DNA of 63,435 nt, filler included, from Octopus bimaculoides (GCF_001194135.2; 6 parts of 5 records of this genome joined end to end with filler, not necessarily neighbours in it); one strand, 5' to 3'. Positions 23,960 through 33,110 are shown, counted from the whole stretch's first letter. A program made the numbers and translations. The notes: generated by a model from the sequence alone, not told the origin.

Positions 23960-23988
23960 ATATATATACATATATATACATACATACA

Positions 23989-24020
<32 letters not shown>

Positions 24021-24169
24021 CACATGAAAAATGGAACAAAAACGCAATAGCAAACAATAAAACATTCGGACAGATAGACGATACAAAGACGGACAGGAGA
24101 AACAACAATTAGAAGGACAGGGAAAAAAAAAAAGATGGTTCATTCTTGGCTTTCTTTCTTCAGTCAAGT

Positions 24170-24660
24170 TACCAGATGTCCTTACTGTTTCGGGCAGTTA
24201 CACTTGAGACAGTTCGATCTGGTTGCCCCCAGAAAAGTCTAAGCTAAAGCATTAGATTTTTTGTAAGAGAGCTAGCGAATGTGTACGGCAACAATGACAT
24301 ACACACACACACAAAAAAACGGAGAACATGGTACACAATTACAAATACAAGAATATAACAAGGAATCAAACTGAGCTGGCGTGTATGAAGTGAAATCATA
24401 AAGGCAGGAACATAGGAGATGGACATAGGAAGTGTTGGCGGTCAGCAGTCAGGCCAAGAAAGAAAGATCATGGCTGACCGAACACCGGTCACAAGGAAGT
24501 AGGAGAGAGGGGTAGGGGGAAGCGGGATTGAAGGATTAGAAAAAATCAAAGAGACAATGGGAAAAGTGCAGGGAAGATAGACGAGGAGCAATAGTGGGAG
24601 TTAAAGACAGGACCAAGAAACGCGCAGGAGAGAGGGGAGACTAAAAGATAGAGTAAAAGA
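24170..24660 (-). mobile_element. Possible 3' region of a Penelope-like element with a decayed hammerhead motif
   Basis: Pyrimidine-rich minus strand ending in GGGCA..TGCCC-GAAAC-A-GTA; no coding remnant seen. Confidence 0.35.
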
Positions 24661-24668
24661 GTCGAAAG

Positions 24669-24711
<43 letters not shown>

Positions 24712-25064
24712 NNNNNNNNNNNNNNNNNNNNNNNNNNNNNNNNNNNNNNNNNNNNNNNNNNNNNNNNNNNNNNNNNNNNNNNNNNNNNNNNNNNNATGAA
24801 TGTAGTAATGTGTGTGTGTATATATTATGAATCGAGTAATGTATATATTATGAATCTAGTAGTGTGTGTGTGTGTGTATGTATGTATGTATATGTATATA
24901 CATACGTATATGTATACAGGCATGCATACGTATGTGTGTGTGTGTGTCTGTGTGTGCATTGTGCATAAAGCAACATGGTGGGCTTGAGGTGTTAGAGGCG
25001 ATAAACAAATACACACGCACATACACATGCACAAATGCACATTATATAGACGGAGAGTATTGCC

Positions 25065-25230
25065 ATGTGCTTTAGAATTTCACTTCGCTACCACTTGGTT
25101 TCGGGTTCAATCCCACTACGGTACTTTTGCTTTGTGTCTTTTACCTTTTTACTAAAGGCCTCGGACCCGACCGATGCCTTCGCGTTTGTGCTTGTCCTTC
25201 CGCTATTTGATAACCAATGTCGGTTTATTT
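25065..25230 (+). mobile_element. Degenerate 5' half of SINE family A
   Basis: GGTTTCGGGTTCAATCCCACT..GGCCTCGGACCCGACCGATGCCTT. Confidence 0.55.
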
Positions 25231-25486
25231 ATGTTCTCATAACTGAGCATTCCGATAAAATATTCGATGCAATATGATCGATTTGTCTGATAAATCCTAC
25301 CATGCAGTATGTATATATATCTCGGCGAGTAACTTTCTAGGTGCGATCCCATGGTCGTTCATGACCGAAGGGGGTCTTTACTTCTTTACTAATCATGATA
25401 CAACCTTAAGAGGTGGAGGCAGTTTTATTAAATCAAGTAAGTTGTATTGTATTTGATACACCTACATTTGTTTATGCCCCGCCTAC

Positions 25487-25547
<61 letters not shown>

Positions 25548-26052
25548 AGTGTCGCAGTGTTGTTTTGGTTTTGTTATTTGTTTTGTCCGAAGCACACAAA
25601 ATCCCACATTTATGAGAAAGAGTATGAGACAATCATCTCTTTCACTTGAACGGGGTCTTGTACTATCATATGACAAACAACTATATCTCGAACGAAATGC
25701 ATTAAATTACATCAGCTTTAGCTTCGGCCTATGAGGTTTCGAGTTCACGTTACATTTCTCTAATGTTGGAAAAGGAAGAAACCAGTAATGTATTAGGATT
25801 AATTTTTACACTACAAAAGTTAACTTAGGAGAAAAAACAATCACCTCTTGTGATCTCTTTAGTTCCATTTTATTGCTGTCGTATGTATGTATGTATGTAT
25901 GTATGTATGTATGTATGTATGTTATCAATCAGTTTCATTTCTGTATTTCTTGTCAATAGAGAAAGAGCCGGACTCTAGCATAGATTCAAGGTTCCTTCAT
26001 TGGAACTTTTATCAACATCATCTAGGTATTTGTGCATATGTGTGTGTATGCA

Positions 26053-26210
26053 CAGATTTGTATGTTTGTTTTATGGATGCGTTTTTATGTATATATTTTC
26101 ATGTCTAGGCGTATGCATATGTATTTATGCGCAGATTTGTATGTTTGTTTTATGGATGCGTTTTTATGTATATATTTTCATGTCTAGATGCATGCATATG
26201 TATTTATGTG
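26053..26210. repeat. 79-bp tandem duplication (2 copies)
   Basis: CAGATTTGTATGTTTGTTTTATGGATGCGTTTTTATGTATATATTTTCATGTCTAG starts at 26053 and 26132. Confidence 0.9.
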
Positions 26211-26485
26211 CCAACATTTTTGAAAAGTTTTACATATCTTTACAGTTCCATTGATGGCTTGAATCTGTAGTCTTCTAATCAGCCGTTTTCTTTCAGGTTT
26301 TGAGAACCCTAATTTTTCCAGTATGTCACTATTCAGTTTTATTTCAAGATTTCTTGCCAATAGAGAAAGAGTAGGGTTCTAATCTAGATCTAAGGCTCCT
26401 TCATTGGAATTAGGGGGTCGCAAAAAGTTATAAAATTGCGCATTAGCTTTGATTAACTGCTGTCTATCGAGATAGTTCGAGACTC

Positions 26486-26698
26486 ATGTTTTCAATACCA
26501 GACTGGTTGTTTTATCAAGCAGTAGGCTTTTTCCAAGAACTTAACAAACCAGAGGTGGTCATTTTCTCAAGTTATTTATTCGTACGGAGTCGTAAAAAGG
26601 AAAGGTCTGTTTTTACCTATTTACAGAGAACTTTAACTAGGCGCAGTACAACACTGATCGAGCCAATACCAAGTTACTGCTTCGAGGTTTTGTATTAG
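26486..26698 (+). pseudogene. Possible highly decayed hAT (Buster/Charlie-type) transposase C-terminal remnant
   Basis: IPDW, FSSYL and IEP.. weakly recall the hAT dimerisation-domain consensus; nearby GGGGTCGCAAAAAGTT and TTGAGAACCC resemble hAT ends. Confidence 0.3.
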
Positions 26699-26949
26699 TA
26701 GCAAGAAACAGGCTCATCCTTCTCACAGGCTTCAATGAAAATGTAATCTGAAATAAATTTGTTTCTTTCATTAATGTTTTTAACCTAGTAGAGTTAAATG
26801 GGTCGCCATAAACTGGTGTCATAAATAATGCGTCGTGTCTCTAAAACGTTTGGGAACAACTGGGCTAGTGTGATATGAGAGTGAATTTGTTGGGATTTTG
26901 TTGTTGCATGTTTGTATTTTCTTAGATTCCGAGCAATCACGTAGAAGAC

Positions 26950-27015
26950 TAGTCTACGAAATACCACCGCTAAGCATTTCGTCGAGAGCACTAACGATTC
27001 TACCAACTCACCACC

Positions 27016-27018
<3 letters not shown>
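26950..27018 (-). mobile_element. SINE family B head fragment
   Basis: CCGCTAAGCATTTCG..CTAACGATTCTACCAACTCACCACCTTA. Confidence 0.6.
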
Positions 27019-27086
<68 letters not shown>

Positions 27087-27087
27087 T
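27017..27087. repeat. (AAT)n microsatellite, 5' flank of R4-like copy 2
   Basis: Directly visible. Confidence 0.95.
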
Positions 27088-28560
27088 ACAAATACCTAGG
27101 GGTAATTGAAGGGGACAATATCAAGCACTCAGTGATGAGGGAAAGGATCAGAAGAGAATGTTACGCAGGGTGAGAGCAATACTGAAGACAGAGCTGAACG
27201 CGAGAAACAGGATCGAAGCGATCAATGCTCTAGCCATACCAGTCGTGACTTACAGTTTCAACATCGTTNNNNNNNNNNNNNNNNNNNNNNNNNNNNNNNN
27301 NNNNNNNNNNNNNNNNNNNNNNNNNNNNNNNNNNNNNNNNNNNNNNNNNNNNNNNNNNNNNNNNNNNNNNNNNNNNNNNNNNNNNNNNNNNNNNNNNNNN
27401 NNNNNNNNNNNNNNNNNNNNNNNNNNNNNNNNNNNNNNNNNNNNNNNNNNNNNNNNNNNNNNNNNNNNNNNNNNNNNNNNNNNNNNNNNNNNNNNNNNNN
27501 NNNNNNNNNNNNNNNNNNNNNNNNNNNNNNNNNNNNNNNNNNNNNNNNNNNNNNNNNNNNNNNNNNNNNNNNNNNNNNNNNNNNNNNNNNNNNNNNNNNN
27601 NNNNNNNNNNNNNNNNNNNNNNNNNNNNNNNNNNNNNNNNNNNNNNNNNNNNNNNNNNNNNNNNNNNNNNNNNNNNNNNNNNNNNNNNNNNNNNNNNNNN
27701 NNNNNNNNNNNNNNNNNNNNNNNNNNNNNNNNNNNNNNNNNNNNNNNNNNNNNNNNNNNNNNNNNNNNNNNNNNNNNNNNNNNNNNNNNNNNNNNNNNNN
27801 NNNNNNNNNNNNNNNNNNNNNNNNNNNNNNNNNNNNNNNNNNNNNNNNNNNNNNNNNNNNNNNNNNNNNNNNNNNNNNNNNNNNNNNNNNNNNNNNNNNN
27901 NNNNNNNNNNNNNNNNNNNNNNNNNNNNNNNNNNNNNNNNNNNNNNNNNNNNNNNNNNNNNNNNNNNNNNNNNNNNNNNNNNNNNNNNNNNNNNNNNNNN
28001 NNNNNNNNNNNNNNNNNNNNNNNNNNNNNNNNNNNNNNNNNNNNNNNNNNNNNNNNNNNNNNNNNNNNNNNNNNNNNNNNNNNNNNNNNNNNNNNNNNNN
28101 NNNNNNNNNNNNNNNNNNNNNNNNNNNNNNNNNNNNNNNNNNNNNNNNNNNNNNNNNNNNNNNNNNNNNNNNNNNNNNNNNNNNNNNNNNNNNNNNNNNN
28201 NNNNNNNNNNNNNNNNNNNNNNNNNNNNNNNNNNNNNNNNNNNNNNNNACTACCTAGCTCAGATACCAGGAAACCCCAAAATGGCTGAAGTTCAAAAGAT
28301 AGTGCTCATGGGAACTGCCCATATCCTACGTAAAATACTGTCTATGTGATCTCAAATTTTAAAGCAAACACATAATTTTCTTATGGTTTCTTAAACGTTC
28401 ACTTGATAAAAACTGTACAAGTCCAAATATATGGTACCCTAGGCATAACACCTACATGAATTTCTAACTTGTTGTCTCTTGAGGTCTCTGGGTGAGACTT
28501 GGATCCAACTTGTACAAATGCAAAACAAAAGTCAAACATAAAATAATAATAATAATAATA
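27088..28560 (+). mobile_element. R4/Dong-like retrotransposon copy 2, 5'-truncated, middle in an assembly gap
   Basis: YKYLGVIEGDNIKHSVMRERIRREC..RVRAILKTELNARNRIEAINALAIPVVTYSFNIV; after the gap the same C-terminus and 3' UTR as 8584-8865, ending in (AAT)n. Confidence 0.92.
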
Positions 28561-28772
28561 CGGTTAGAGTTAGAGTTAGGGTTGAGGTTAGGGTTACAGT
28601 TAGCGATAGGTTTAGGGTTAGGGTTAGAGTTAGGGATAGGGTTAGGGTTAGGGTTAGGGTTACGATTAGGGATAGGGTAAGGGTTAGGGATAGGGTTCGG
28701 GTTAGGGATAGGGTAAGAGTTAGGGTTAGGATTAGGGTTAGGGTCAGGGTTAGGGCTAGGGCTAAGGTTAGG
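28561..28772 (+). repeat. Degenerate (TTAGGG)n telomere-type array, about 35 hexamers
   Basis: Directly visible; G-rich strand is +. Confidence 0.95.
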
Positions 28773-28809
28773 TATTTTTTCCAATGTCCGGTGTTATTTT
28801 CTTGTGTAC
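28773..28809 (-). repeat. Single inverted copy of the 38-bp satellite unit
   Basis: TATTTTTTCCAATGTCCGGTGTTATTTTCTTGTGTAC is the reverse complement of the unit at 28813-29310. Confidence 0.9.
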
Positions 28810-28812
28810 AGA

Positions 28813-29310
28813 AACACGGGACATCGGAAACAAAACGTAGACACGAAAATAACACAGGACATTCGAAACAAAACGTAGACAGGAAAATAACACGGGACAT
28901 TGGAAACAAAACGTAGACAAGAAAATAACAGGGGACATTGGAAACGAAACATAGACAAGAAAATAACACGGGACATTGGAAACAATACGTAGACAAGAAA
29001 ATAACACGGGACATGGGAAACAAAATGTAGGCAAGAAAATAACACGGGACATCGCAAACAAAACGTAGACAAGACATTAATAACACGGGACATTGCAAAC
29101 AAAACGTAGACAAGAAAATAACACGGGACATTGCAAACAAAACGTAGACAAGAATTAACACAGGACACTGAAAACAAAACGTACACAAGAAAATAACATG
29201 GGAAATTGGAAACAAAACGTAGACAAGAAAATAATACGGGACACTGGAAAAAAAACGTAGCCAAGAAAATAACACGGGACATTGGAAATAAAACGTAGAC
29301 AAGAAAATAA
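28813..29310 (+). repeat. 38-bp minisatellite, 13 units, consensus AACACGGGACATTGGAAACAAAACGTAGACAAGAAAAT
   Basis: Unit starts at 28813, 28851, 28889, 28927, 28965, 29003, 29041, 29082, 29120, 29157, 29195, 29233, 29271. Confidence 0.95.
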
Positions 29311-30619
29311 CCCTAAACCTAACCCTAACCTTCACCCTAACCCTAACACAAACCCTAACACTAACCCTAACCTAACACAAACCCTAAACCAAACACTAAC
29401 CCTAACTCTAACACTAACCCTAACCTTAAACCTAAAACTCACACTAACCTTAACTCTAACCGTCACCCTAACTTTAACCCTAAATCTAACCCTAACCCTA
29501 ACACTAAACCTAACCCAAACCCTAATCCTAACCCTAACGCTAACCCAAACCCTAACCCTAACCCTAACACAAACCCTAACCCAAACGCTAACCCTAAACC
29601 TAACCCTAAACCTAACCCTAACCATAACCCTAAACCTAAACCTAACCCTAATTCTAACACTAACCCTAACTCGAACACTAATCATAACCCTAACCCTAAC
29701 CCTAACCCTAACCCTAACCCTAACCCTAACCCTAACTCTAACCCTAACCCTAGCCATTGCCATAGCCCTAACCCTAGACGTAGCCCTAACCTTAACCCTA
29801 AACCTAACCTTAAACCTAACCCTAACCCTAATCCTAAACCTAACCCTAACCCTAACCCTAACCCTAACGATAACCCTAACCCTAACGCTAACCCTAACCC
29901 TAACCCTAACCCTAACCCTATCCTTAACCCTAACCCTAACCCTAAACCTATCCCTAACCCTAATCTTAAACCTAACCCTAACCCTAACACTAACCCTAAC
30001 ATTAACCCTAACCCTAACCCTAAACCTTACCCTAATGCTAACCCTAAACATAACCCTAACCCTAACACTAACCCTAAACCTAACCCTAACCCTAACCCTA
30101 ACCCTTACCCTCACCCTAACACTAAACATAGCCCTAACACTAACCCTAACCCTAAACCAAACCCTAACCCTAACGTAATCCCTTACCCTAACCCTAACGC
30201 TAACCCTAACCCTAACCCTTACCCTATCCCTAACCCTAACCCCAACCCTAAACCTTACACTAACGCTAACCCTAACCCTAACCCTAACCCTAGACCTAAT
30301 CCTAACCCTAACACTAACCCTAACCCTAACCCTAAAGCTAACGCTAACCATAACCGTAAACCTAACCCTAGCCCTTACCCTAACACTAAACCTAACCCTA
30401 ACCCTAACCCCAACCCTAACCCTAACCCTAACGCTAACCCTAACCCTAACCGAAACCCTAACCCTAACCCTAACCCTAACCCTAACTCTAACCCTAACCC
30501 TAACTGTAACCCTAACCGTAACCCTAACCCTAAACCTTACGCTAACCCCAACGTTAACTTTAACCCTAAACCTAACCCTAACCCTAACCCTAACCATAAC
30601 CCTTACGCTAACGGTGACA

Positions 30620-30659
<40 letters not shown>

Positions 30660-30769
30660 CCCTAACAGTAACTCTAAACCTAACCCTAACCCTAACCCTA
30701 ACACTAACCCTAACCTTAACCCTAACCCTAACCCTAACCATAACCATAACCCTTACGCTAACGCTAACA

Positions 30770-30809
<40 letters not shown>

Positions 30810-30820
30810 CCCTAACCCTA
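29311..30820 (-). repeat. Degenerate (CCCTAA)n telomere-type array, about 250 hexamers
   Basis: Directly visible; variants include CACTAA, CGCTAA, CTCTAA, ACCTAA, CCTTAA, CCATAA; G-rich strand is -. Confidence 0.97.
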
Positions 30821-31409
30821 GAATTTAAAATCACTTTAACTTTCTAAGACATTTCAACGCTTCTAAATGCAAACTTTGTTTGTTTGTTTACGTTAGTCGT
30901 AACTTGAATTTAACATTATTATTATATTATATTATATTTAAATATAGGCCTAAAAATATTATTGTGTATTGACCTTTACTAATTAACCAAATCATATAAT
31001 ACGCTTTAATTTGGATACAAATATGAATATATACATTAAAAAATTTTCACAAAATAAATCTAAATTTACAAACCTAACATAAATTAGATATAATATAGAT
31101 GTAAATAACATACATTATATTATATTATATAATATTTAAATATCAGTTTAATAATAATATTGAGTATTGATCTAAATTAATCGCATGATATAATACATTT
31201 TAGTTTAGACACAAATTCTATAAATCTATCGATAACAGCAATTTTGATGACGTAATATACCGAATAAATCCACGTACGAATCATAAATATATAATGTAGA
31301 CCTACATGGGAATATTACATGTTAGATCCCAATATACGGCTAAATATATAATACTATACTATATAATAACTAGAAATCAATATCTAGATATAAGCAATAA
31401 TATTTATTT

Positions 31410-31714
31410 ATTGACCGTTCTAAAGCCTAGCCAGGTCCATGGGTCCGGTTTCCCGGTTTCTATAGCGTATGTGTTCCCTCCAGCTGGACGGGACGCCAGT
31501 CCATCACAGCATTACTCAAAAATCAGAAAGAAGGAGTCAGAGATAGTTGGGGCGAAAGAGTAAAACAGGCGTCGCCACCACTCCGTGCCGGAGCCTCGTG
31601 GTGCTTTAGGTGTTTTCGCTCAATAAACATACACAACTCCCGGTCTGGGAATCGAAACCGCGATCCTCTGCCTGCGAATCCGCTGCCGTAACCACTGGGC
31701 CATTGCACCTCCAC
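31410..31714 (-). mobile_element. tRNA-derived SINE with a family C head and a different 3' tail
   Basis: Head GTGGAGGTGCAATGGCCCAGTGGTTA..GGTTTCGATTCCCAGACCGGG shared with 60620; tail GATGGACTGGCGTCCCGTCCAG.. Confidence 0.8.
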
Positions 31715-31827
31715 TAAGCAATAATATAATTGCTTTAATAACCTTTTAATAATATACATATACACTTATGAGCTAATGAAGTAACTTTAGAAGGAAACAT
31801 CTATATACACACGCTCAGACATATATC

Positions 31828-32275
31828 TCTTTCTTTATCGCTCACAGGTTAAACATAGGGGAGACAAACAAGGACAGACAAAAGGATTAAGTCGATTACA
31901 TAGAACTCAATGTATAACTGGTACTTATTTAATTGACCCCGAAAGAATGAAAGGCAAAGTCGACTTCGGTGGAATTTGAACTCAGAATGTAACAGCAGAC
32001 GAAATACCGCTAAGCATTTCGCCCGGCATGCTACCGTTTCTTATTTCTTTATTGCCCACAAGAGGTTAAACATAGAGGGGACAAACAAGTACAGACAAAG
32101 GGATTAAGTCGATTACATCGACCCCAGTGCGTGACTGGTACTTAATTTATCGACGACGAAAAGATGTAAGGCAAAGTCGACCTCGGCGGAACTTGAACTC
32201 AGAACGTAACCGCAGACGAAATACTGCTAAGCATTTCGCCCGGCGTGCTAACGTTTCTGCCAGCTCGCCGCCTTA
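31828..32275 (-). mobile_element. SINE family B head-to-tail dimer
   Basis: Two copies of the ..GTTCAA.TTCC.CCGA.GTCGACTTTGCC..AAGTACCAG..TAATCGACTTAATCC body, joined at 32041. Confidence 0.9.
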
Positions 32276-32883
32276 TGTGCATACACACACACACACACAC
32301 ANNNNNNNNNNNNNNNNNNNNNNNNNNNNNNNNNNNNNNNNNNNNNNNNNNNNNNNNNNNNNNNNNNNNNNNNNNNNNNNNNNNNNNNNNNNNNNNNNNN
32401 NNNNNNNNNNNNNNNNNNNNNNNNNNNNNNNNNNNNNNNNNNNNNNNNNNNNNNNNNNNNNNNNNNNNNNNNNNNNNNNNNNNNNNNNNNNNNNNNNNNN
32501 NNNNNNNNNNNNNNNNNNNNAATACATAAATAATGACTTCCATATATACATATACACATACACATACATGCACGTGCATACACAGATATACATAAATTTC
32601 ATTTCAGCTTTATTTATTTTTATTTTTATTTCTTATTTCTGTTTATTTTATTATATACTTTATCATTTACTTTTACTCTTATATACTTTAATTTATTATT
32701 ATCATTATTATCGAATTTGAAAATAAATATGAATATCAAAGAATGTGCAAATAAACACACACGCTCACACAAATAATAAACATGCCTTTATCTTAGTCTA
32801 TACGTGGCCAGAAATATGTATGTGTTACCTCTGATATCGATAACAAAAACATGATGTGATAGGATATAACTGTGAATATATCA

Positions 32884-33073
32884 CTCTTTCACTCTTTTAC
32901 TTGTTTCAGTCATTTGACTGTGACCATGCTGTAGCACCGCCTTAGTCGAGCAAATCGACCCCAGGACTTATTCTTTTGAAGCCTAGTACTTACTCTATCG
33001 GTCTCTTTTGCCGAACCGCTAAGTTACGGGGCCGTAAACACACCACCATCGGTTGTCAAACACAGACACACAA

Positions 33074-33110
<37 letters not shown>

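Follow-up and report, generated by a model that had tools for sequence, protein, structure and literature searches.

Head-to-head telomeric arrays around a locus-specific 38-bp minisatellite in Octopus bimaculoides, a candidate interstitial scar of break repair

How do two telomeric arrays come to face each other inside a chromosome, with copies of one short repeat between them? The question is raised by a locus at positions 28561-30820 of the window, the 63,435-nucleotide stretch of Octopus bimaculoides DNA (GCF_001194135.2; six parts of five records joined end to end with filler) that we analyzed. A preliminary description of this DNA had read the locus as five parts, namely a TTAGGG array, one inverted 38-mer, GTAC, 13 further 38-mers, and a CCCTAA array. 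Two origins were offered for it: (a) a fusion of two chromosome ends capped by the same repeat, implying a capping mechanism other than telomerase, or (b) a fold-back or MITE-type element with modular arms. Reading of the sequence together with Tandem Repeats Finder confirmed the five-part layout, and the features are as follows.

28249-28561, plus strand: left flank, the 3' portion of a highly abundant dispersed repeat with an (ATA/TAA)n tail up to the array; summed contig depth 1-2 x 10^6 versus about 45 for single-copy DNA
28562-28772, plus strand: left telomeric array, GGTTAG x35.2 (Tandem Repeats Finder, 78% matches, score 247)
28768-28809, minus strand: single inverted 38-mer unit, 34/38 to the consensus; the minus strand reads GTACACAAGAAAATAACACCGGACATTGGAAAAAATAC, then directly CTAACC...
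28805-28810, no strand: TGTACA palindrome at which the 38-mer orientation flips, with exact contigs across it
28806-29311, plus strand: 38-bp minisatellite, 13 units and a partial 14th, with unit boundaries read from the sequence
28813-29311, plus strand: the same repeat as called by Tandem Repeats Finder, 38-mer x13.1, consensus AACACGGGACATTGGAAACAAAACGTAGACAAGAAAAT (88% matches, score 768)
29308-30820, G-strand on the minus strand: right telomeric array, TAACCC x252.3 (Tandem Repeats Finder, 80% matches, 0% indels, score 1876)
30821-30945, plus strand: right flank, a truncated second dispersed repeat with an (ATTAT)n tail; depth about 3.3 x 10^5 on 30829-30894

The polarity is head-to-head, as had been described: both G-strands run 5' to 3' toward the center. 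The inverted unit on the left arm is recognizably the same 38-mer as that on the right, and the two telomeric arrays are separated by a spacer of 535 bp. The arms had been said to meet at GTAC. That position (28806-28809) holds, and the four bases are the inner part of the larger palindrome TGTACA, where the microhomology between the arms amounts to 2 to 6 nt. Both arms begin at the same position of the unit (GTA...). Some units of the minisatellite depart from 38 bp, with 31 bp in the first, 41 bp in unit 8, and 37 bp in unit 10; a 33-nt unit pattern had 13 matches against 0 expected. At the inner junction on the right, the 38-mer and the CCCTAA array overlap by TAAC (29308-29311). The hairpin at the center is weak (-13.9 kcal/mol, z = -3.0), and the cruciform suggested earlier has small potential. 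The locus was also called gap-free. This is true of 28249-32302, while the surrounding piece (23960-33110), scaffolded from short reads, is interrupted by three N gaps, at 24712-24796, 27270-28248, and 32303-32520.

We asked whether the inversion exists outside the reference by using Logan contigs, which are assembled per run and independently of the reference assembly. The center (28766-28924) was crossed exactly in X1 (186 nt, depth 52.9), X2 (188 nt, depth 60), X3 (186 nt, depth 81.6), and X5 (174 nt, depth 52.4), as well as in the shallow run X10 (160 nt, depth 7.6), and it was crossed with two mismatches in X4 (depth 57.9) and X8 (depth 48.3). The single-copy baseline, taken from the unique right flank at 30838-31369, was 45.3 in X1, 53.7 in X4, and 19 in X9. 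The junction of the left flank with TTAGGG (28532-28634) was exact at 1x depth in X1, X2, X3, and X5, and the junction of the 38-mers with CCCTAA was spanned by 143-nt contigs reaching about 31 nt beyond 29316. Independent contigs confirm the right arm for its first 35 nt or so, to about 29347. Across six to seven runs, the center, both inner junctions, and the left outer junction were single copy.

A word index gave the same picture. In the 2015 sample, center words were at 0 in two runs and were all present in the third, so that absence from one old run is weak proof. Shared words in another organism were confined to X11 and were telomeric words alone, with no flank words. Since contigs cross the inversion at single-copy depth, we conclude that it is a genomic single-copy structure and not a misassembly, and the earlier suggestion that reads might lack the inversion at GTAC is refuted.

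These data also bear on the idea that the locus is a mobile element of fold-back or MITE type, its arms modular, or else an artefact of assembly. Such an origin is very improbable. It would suit the inverted arms of similar composition and a scaffold built from short reads with N gaps. However, the diagnostic junctions lie at single-copy depth in several samples, and center words occur in runs of 10 samples from 4 studies, well beyond one assembly. We found no target-site duplication at 28557-28561 and 30821-30825 (AATAC versus AGAAT), and the arms, of 211 and 1513 bp, are not mutual copies. Origin (b), a family of fold-back elements, fails on the same three counts of single-copy junctions, missing duplication, and dissimilar arms.

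The next question concerns the 38-mer itself. Of its 38 bases, 34 come from the interior of a dispersed repeat that is present in roughly 10,000 copies. One stretch of the array, 29088-29121 (GGACATTGCAAACAAAACGTAGACAAGAAAATA), matches this repeat with a summed depth of about 5.5 x 10^5 in X1. About 90 nt of the parent repeat were recovered, from loose contig ends. Its own flanks (...GGTGCATATCTGGGTACA on the upstream side, TAATAACCAGAGTACAGAAAACACACA on the downstream side) show no tandem or telomeric sequence, and it carries TAATAACC at the place of the TAAC overlap of the right junction. Contigs across the unit-to-unit boundaries had 1 to 1.5 times single-copy depth, the long ones about 1x, while the high-depth matches to the 38-mer were 34-nt pieces with non-tandem flanks. 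A genome-wide or subtelomeric 38-bp satellite was rejected on these two observations. The 38-mer is thus a minisatellite that arose locally by amplification of part of the interior of a dispersed repeat, and its tandem array and fold-back occur at no other locus. The unit's conserved 24-mer had 0 matches in a scan of metagenome contigs, and a search of the piece 23960-33110 found no further copy of the parent repeat.

This origin removes the basis for origin (a), in which two ends would have been capped by the same repeat without telomerase: the supposed cap is a local tandem copy of a repeat of about 10^4 copies whose flanks elsewhere are non-telomeric. A 38-mer occurring mostly without telomeric repeats, together with a unique junction, had been named at the outset as the finding that would speak against the proposed structure, and it is essentially what the reads show. 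A capping repeat other than TTAGGG, or a transposon with telomere modules, would be striking if real; the reads show neither.

We then considered the DNA on either side. The left-flank repeat continues into the N gap at 27270-28248, with loose ends at 28249/28250, and its 5' part is lost there; its other copies diverge from the locus past 28560. The right-flank repeat is truncated exactly at the edge of the telomeric array, and other copies extend upstream as ATCCTGCGATAGAG-AATTTAAAAATCACTT. Unique single-copy DNA occupies 30961-31390, beginning 140 bp from the right arm. At the left outer junction (...AATAATA|(C)GGTTAG), 2 nt are in telomeric register if the C is a mutated G, and at the right one (CCCTA|GAATTT), 1 to 3 nt are; with A/T-rich flanks, the chance of such matches is not negligible at either. 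Both outer junctions adjoin ordinary dispersed repeats rather than subtelomeric blocks. The locus thus has telomeric hexamers away from a chromosome end, bordered left and right by non-telomeric DNA, which places it among interstitial telomeric sequences (ITSs). TTAGGG is the experimentally determined telomere motif of cephalopods (PMC13218726).

Head-to-head telomeric repeats call to mind a fusion of chromosome ends, here one in which a telomere had become critically short (the 211 bp on the left) and the joint took up filler. The human fusion ITS at 2q13 shares the (TTAGGG)n-(CCCTAA)n polarity, the degenerate units, and array lengths from hundreds of bp to over 1 kb. Unequal arms would suit the fusion of a short telomere, and the array lengths are nearer to the fusion class of ITSs than to typical short ITSs. 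Nevertheless, we regard a fusion as improbable. The 2q13 arrays abut and are flanked by subtelomeric duplications, whereas here the 535-bp spacer lies between the arrays, which directly adjoin ordinary dispersed repeats followed by unique DNA; there are no subtelomeric duplications or mosaics of degenerate repeats, and single-copy DNA begins close to the right arm.

The ancestral fusion sites of the muntjac (PMC2760882) also differ from our locus in lacking such a spacer. They resemble it in that a telomeric array adjoins a tandem satellite at an internal site. However, muntjac satellite I is a genome-wide centromeric repeat of 12-105 kb with one telomeric block in head-to-tail arrangement (PMC2760882), while the tandem repeat here is confined to the locus and is enclosed by two telomeric arrays in inverted orientation. 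Octopod karyotypes are reported as uniformly 2n = 60 (PMC5646656), and a fusion recent enough to have decayed by only about 11% is hard to accommodate in so uniform a count. A polymorphic allele in one sample, probably a deletion and described below, is likewise hard to square with a structural role. The locus is a caution against reading every head-to-head pair of telomeric arrays as a chromosome fusion.

The age and make-up of the two arrays were compared next. The left arm comprises 35 units over 211 bp and is 12.3% diverged from the canonical unit, with the ATAGGG variant enriched; the corresponding CCCTAT was significantly enriched in the left arm (p = 0.002). The right arm comprises 252 units over 1513 bp, 127 of which are perfect, with a per-base divergence of 10.9% from CCCTAA. 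It holds the hexamer register over 1.5 kb with a single 1-nt deletion. This degeneracy in both arrays had been noted before as fitting an old structure, and the measured divergences agree with that view. C-to-A substitutions accounted for 65 of the 164 differences seen in the right arm and for 1 of 25 in the left (p = 2e-4), the right-arm variants being chiefly CACTAA (19 units) and ACCTAA (17 units). Shared variant units at a lag of 25 revealed an internal duplication of 25 units (150 bp) in the right arm, 30594-30665 versus 30744-30815, and no other lag rose above shuffles in a search for higher-order periodicity. Because only the one duplication was found, higher-order amplification does not explain the excess of variants. 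The C-to-A asymmetry could reflect strand-dependent damage to the G-strand, or an array that was rich in variants when it was made.

Aligned in the register of the junctions, the left and right arms were identical at 155 of 204 positions, compared to an all-offset mean of 160.4 (sd 3.6); this register ranked 203 of 217, and the best of all registers reached 84% identity. The left arm as a recent inverted copy of the right arm was therefore rejected, since no register gave excess similarity and the variant spectra differ. Divergence being alike, in-register similarity lacking, and spectra different, the two arms appear from their sequence to be similar in age and independent in make-up.

These comparisons weigh on the main rival to our preferred reading, in which a one-sided ITS underwent inverted duplication by fold-back. 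This history would start from a copy of the dispersed repeat with a few 38-bp units, followed by (CCCTAA)n and the right flank. A break left of the array would fold back at TGTACA and be copied in reverse over one unit and about 35 telomeric units, the product would be joined to the left flank, and decay would come later. We consider this history possible but rather unlikely. It would account for the shared start position of the arms and for the TGTACA between them. The two junctions of 38-mer and telomeric array can, moreover, be aligned if one 18-nt deletion is allowed (GAAAATAACCCTAA versus GAAAAAATACCTAA). However, the left arm is no more similar to the start of the right arm than to its other registers, and the variant spectra differ both in C-to-A changes and in CCCTAT. 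It follows from these two observations that a duplication, if there was one, came before almost all of the decay.

Sample S6 provided evidence of polymorphism that touches the same question. In its run, X6, the left junction drew no contig when likeness was relaxed to 99%, and the center and 28899-29069 drew none down to 88%. Instead, X6 contains a 163-nt contig of depth 130.7 made up of 16 nt (TGCATATCTGGGTACA), positions 29201-29316, and 31 nt of CCCTAA array. The 16 nt are the native upstream flank of the dispersed repeat, and they abut unit 11. S6 appears to be without the left arm and the center. This contig has the simple form that a fold-back history postulates (native upstream flank, units 11-13, and CCCTAA, with neither left junction nor center), and it therefore counts in favor of that history.

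However, S6 carries the private variants of units 11-13 found in the reference, with 1 mismatch in 116, while units 1-10 differ mutually by about 12% and the left arm is decayed to a similar extent. The S6 form is thus not the ancestor of units 1-10 and a left arm that decayed later. For the same reason, we believe that the S6 allele is probably derived, by deletion or replacement of everything left of 29201. Its simplest reading would be that unit 11 recombined with a copy of the dispersed parent repeat, or that a template switch occurred between the two. The S6 haplotype as the ancestral state was set aside as a simplest reading on account of the shared variants. X6 also contains the unit 8/9 junction (29093-29152), which is hard to place in the proposed deletion allele.

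Our preferred reading, held tentatively and with a little less than even confidence, is that the locus is an old, non-functional ITS left by double-strand-break repair of a chromosome. The anatomy requires two facing G-strand 3' ends, both bearing non-telomeric DNA. Telomerase would have seeded TTAGGG arrays on two facing 3' ends, the left at the A/T-rich tail of a dispersed repeat (28561) and the right inside another dispersed repeat (30821), the two flanks being putative neighbors before the event. Seeding on each facing end would make the G-strand run from each flank to the center. As two G-rich ends are unable to anneal to each other, they would have been joined through filler, taken from a common dispersed repeat, by microhomology-mediated end joining. 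TAAC and TGTACA would be the microhomologies used, with a snap-back (inverted) copy at TGTACA. The filler would then have grown, or grown further, into the 38-bp minisatellite, and the arrays would since have decayed by about 11-12% per base. Seeding of both ends, the order of these events, and the snap-back step are what we infer from the finished structure, as is the direction of the polymorphism in S6.

Several observations support repair of a break. Both G-strands point to the center, the outer junctions lie at ordinary dispersed repeats with a few nucleotides that may be in telomeric register, and the inner junctions show microhomology in the TAAC overlap and in TGTACA. The spacer is unique (depth 48-82 versus 45-54 for single-copy DNA), and its parent exists in about 10^4 copies elsewhere. 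The arms are alike in age and independent in make-up, and transcription is absent. In ITSs documented from primates, rodents, and horse, the repeats were added by telomerase to a 3' end on which a few in-register nucleotides lay exposed; such nucleotides were found at the break in 78% of telomerase-made ITS insertions, and about 29% of insertions involved complex rearrangements (PMC7215372).

Other features sit less easily with repair of a break. Among break-repair ITSs, an array of 252 units would be one of the longer ones. The unit position shared by both arms (GTA...) is more natural for a true fold-back copy, and junctions that can be aligned with an 18-nt deletion favor inverted duplication of one junction. 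A C-to-A excess in the right arm only is unlike neutral decay of two arrays of equal age. Finally, the S6 haplotype could be ancestral, which would turn the history into one of two steps.

In a third history, the spacer would be the relic of reverse transcription that telomeric ends primed on dispersed-repeat RNA. The two G-strand 3' ends would each prime at a UAACC-like site, in the manner of endonuclease-independent retrotransposition and twin priming, and the cDNAs would meet at TGTACA, leaving filler that is antisense on the left and sense on the right. Twin priming of L1 was reportedly described by Ostertag and Kazazian in 2001, and endonuclease-independent L1 insertion at dysfunctional telomeres is said to have been reported by Morrish et al. 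in 2007. Common to those systems and our locus are mobile-element sequence on a G-strand 3' end and opposite segments that meet at a microhomology. Here, the filler on each arm is attached to the G-strand 3' end and is antisense to the direction of synthesis of its strand, as twin priming predicts. The TAAC overlap of the right junction, where the parent repeat has its matching bases, fits as well.

We nonetheless judge such bridging to be quite improbable. In contrast to L1 twin priming, the locus shows no evidence of reverse transcription, no poly(A), and no element end, and the parent is a candidate retroelement only, known from some 90 nt of loose ends. Its other copies are non-tandem, and 13 units would need a separate expansion. 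Capture of filler at the DNA level gives the same junctions without an RNA step. The known classes of telomere-specific or telomere-primed retroelements (TRAS/SART, Athena-type Penelope-like elements, and endonuclease-independent L1) were rejected as an identity for the locus, which has no open reading frame beyond those made by its repeats and no hammerhead, and whose repeat orientation is opposite on its two sides. If telomere-primed bridging were true, a mobile element would have repaired or capped telomeric ends in an animal with telomerase, and the locus would still be fragile, as the S6 deletion allele suggests.

Returning to repair of a break, the closest documented counterpart is a horse locus (Fig. 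4a of PMC7215372; model of Nergadze and colleagues). Common to both are internal arrays and ordinary flanks, and a few nucleotides at the break, in register in the horse, may be so here. In the horse, an inversion with short inverted duplications likewise created head-to-head stretches with non-telomeric DNA between them. The octopus arrays are far longer (35 and 252 units) and far more decayed, the insertion here is a candidate one, and the spacer is a 13-unit minisatellite from a dispersed repeat (PMC7215372). By this analogy, the locus is best filed as a candidate complex break-repair ITS, of a kind already documented in horse. Its size and a minisatellite spacer of traceable origin are unusual. 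A literature search for octopus or cephalopod ITS reports and for the flank-repeat string returned nothing specific.

We also looked for signs of present function. Words sampled from 28766-29316 were at 0.00 in 15 RNA runs of the species, and the open reading frames at the locus were repeat-generated frames only. Rfam at a permissive threshold and a tRNA scan of the piece returned only sub-threshold, low-complexity miRNA-like matches, with no hammerhead and no tRNA-derived feature at the locus. A reverse-transcriptase-like fragment at 27090-27269 was not significant in Pfam. The locus is untranscribed in these runs, and no evidence of a present function was seen in these searches. We propose that it is now a neutral, somewhat unstable scar.

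As a read-supported, complex head-to-head interstitial telomeric scar outside vertebrates, with well-preserved junctions, the locus is a possible marker for how ITSs arise in molluscs and a candidate fragile or polymorphic site. The piece in which it lies, 23960-33110, is dense in microsatellites and dispersed repeats, another of which is found at 32880-33060.

The two telomeric arms of the head-to-head structure differ strongly in their substitution spectra. In the right, CCCTAA-type arm (29311-30820), C to A changes, equivalent to G to T on the G-strand, made up 65 of the 164 changes, and transversions outnumbered transitions by 121 to 43. In the left, TTAGGG-type arm (28562-28772), just 1 of 25 changes was C to A (Fisher p = 2e-4 for the difference between arms), and transversions and transitions were about equal. 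Strand-asymmetric damage could be one source of this contrast. Alternatively, the right arm could have been rich in variants from birth.

At the centre of the structure (28766-28929), where the 38-mer copies change orientation, we identified a second allele carrying two single-base differences. This allele was seen in contigs of 243 and 227 nt (sequencing runs X4, X8, and X44), and the word share of the centre was 0.61 with it versus 0.92-1.00 in other samples. Sample S6 (run X6) apparently lacks the joint between the left flank and the TTAGGG array, the centre, and 38-mer units 1-7; the native upstream flank of the dispersed repeat from which the units derive is joined at 29201 instead (region 29201-29316). 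A simple deletion allele does not account for S6 still having the unit 8/9 junction (29093-29152).

For telomere-like words from the two arms (28605-28650 and 30763-30828), the depths added up to 10^7 in organism A's runs and to 10^8 in those of organism B. Because of these depths, we suggest that both genomes hold megabases of telomeric or telomere-like DNA, possibly including many ITSs. The surrounding sequence carries further repeats and a retroelement-like fragment, as follows.

26033-26208, 79-bp tandem unit, 2.2 copies, 92% match
27017-27269, perfect (TAA)23 microsatellite, then a reverse transcriptase-like fragment
31420-31700 and 32880-33060, two more very abundant dispersed repeats, depths up to 8 x 10^6
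31846-32258, 217-bp tandem unit, 1.9 copies, 86% match

The 32880-33060 repeat may correspond to a common octopus SINE. The fragment following (TAA)23 resembles the C-terminus of reverse transcriptase from a retroelement (..YKYLGVIEGDNIKHSV.. / ..NARNRIEAINALAIPVVTYSFNIV). It contains a frameshift, continues up to the N gap at 27270-28248, and gave no significant Pfam match. The 79-bp repeat is embedded in AT-rich, TG-rich surroundings. Much of the 217-bp tandem repeat resembles a dispersed repeat, and the motif CCGCTAAGCATTTCG is common to it and to 26968-26982.
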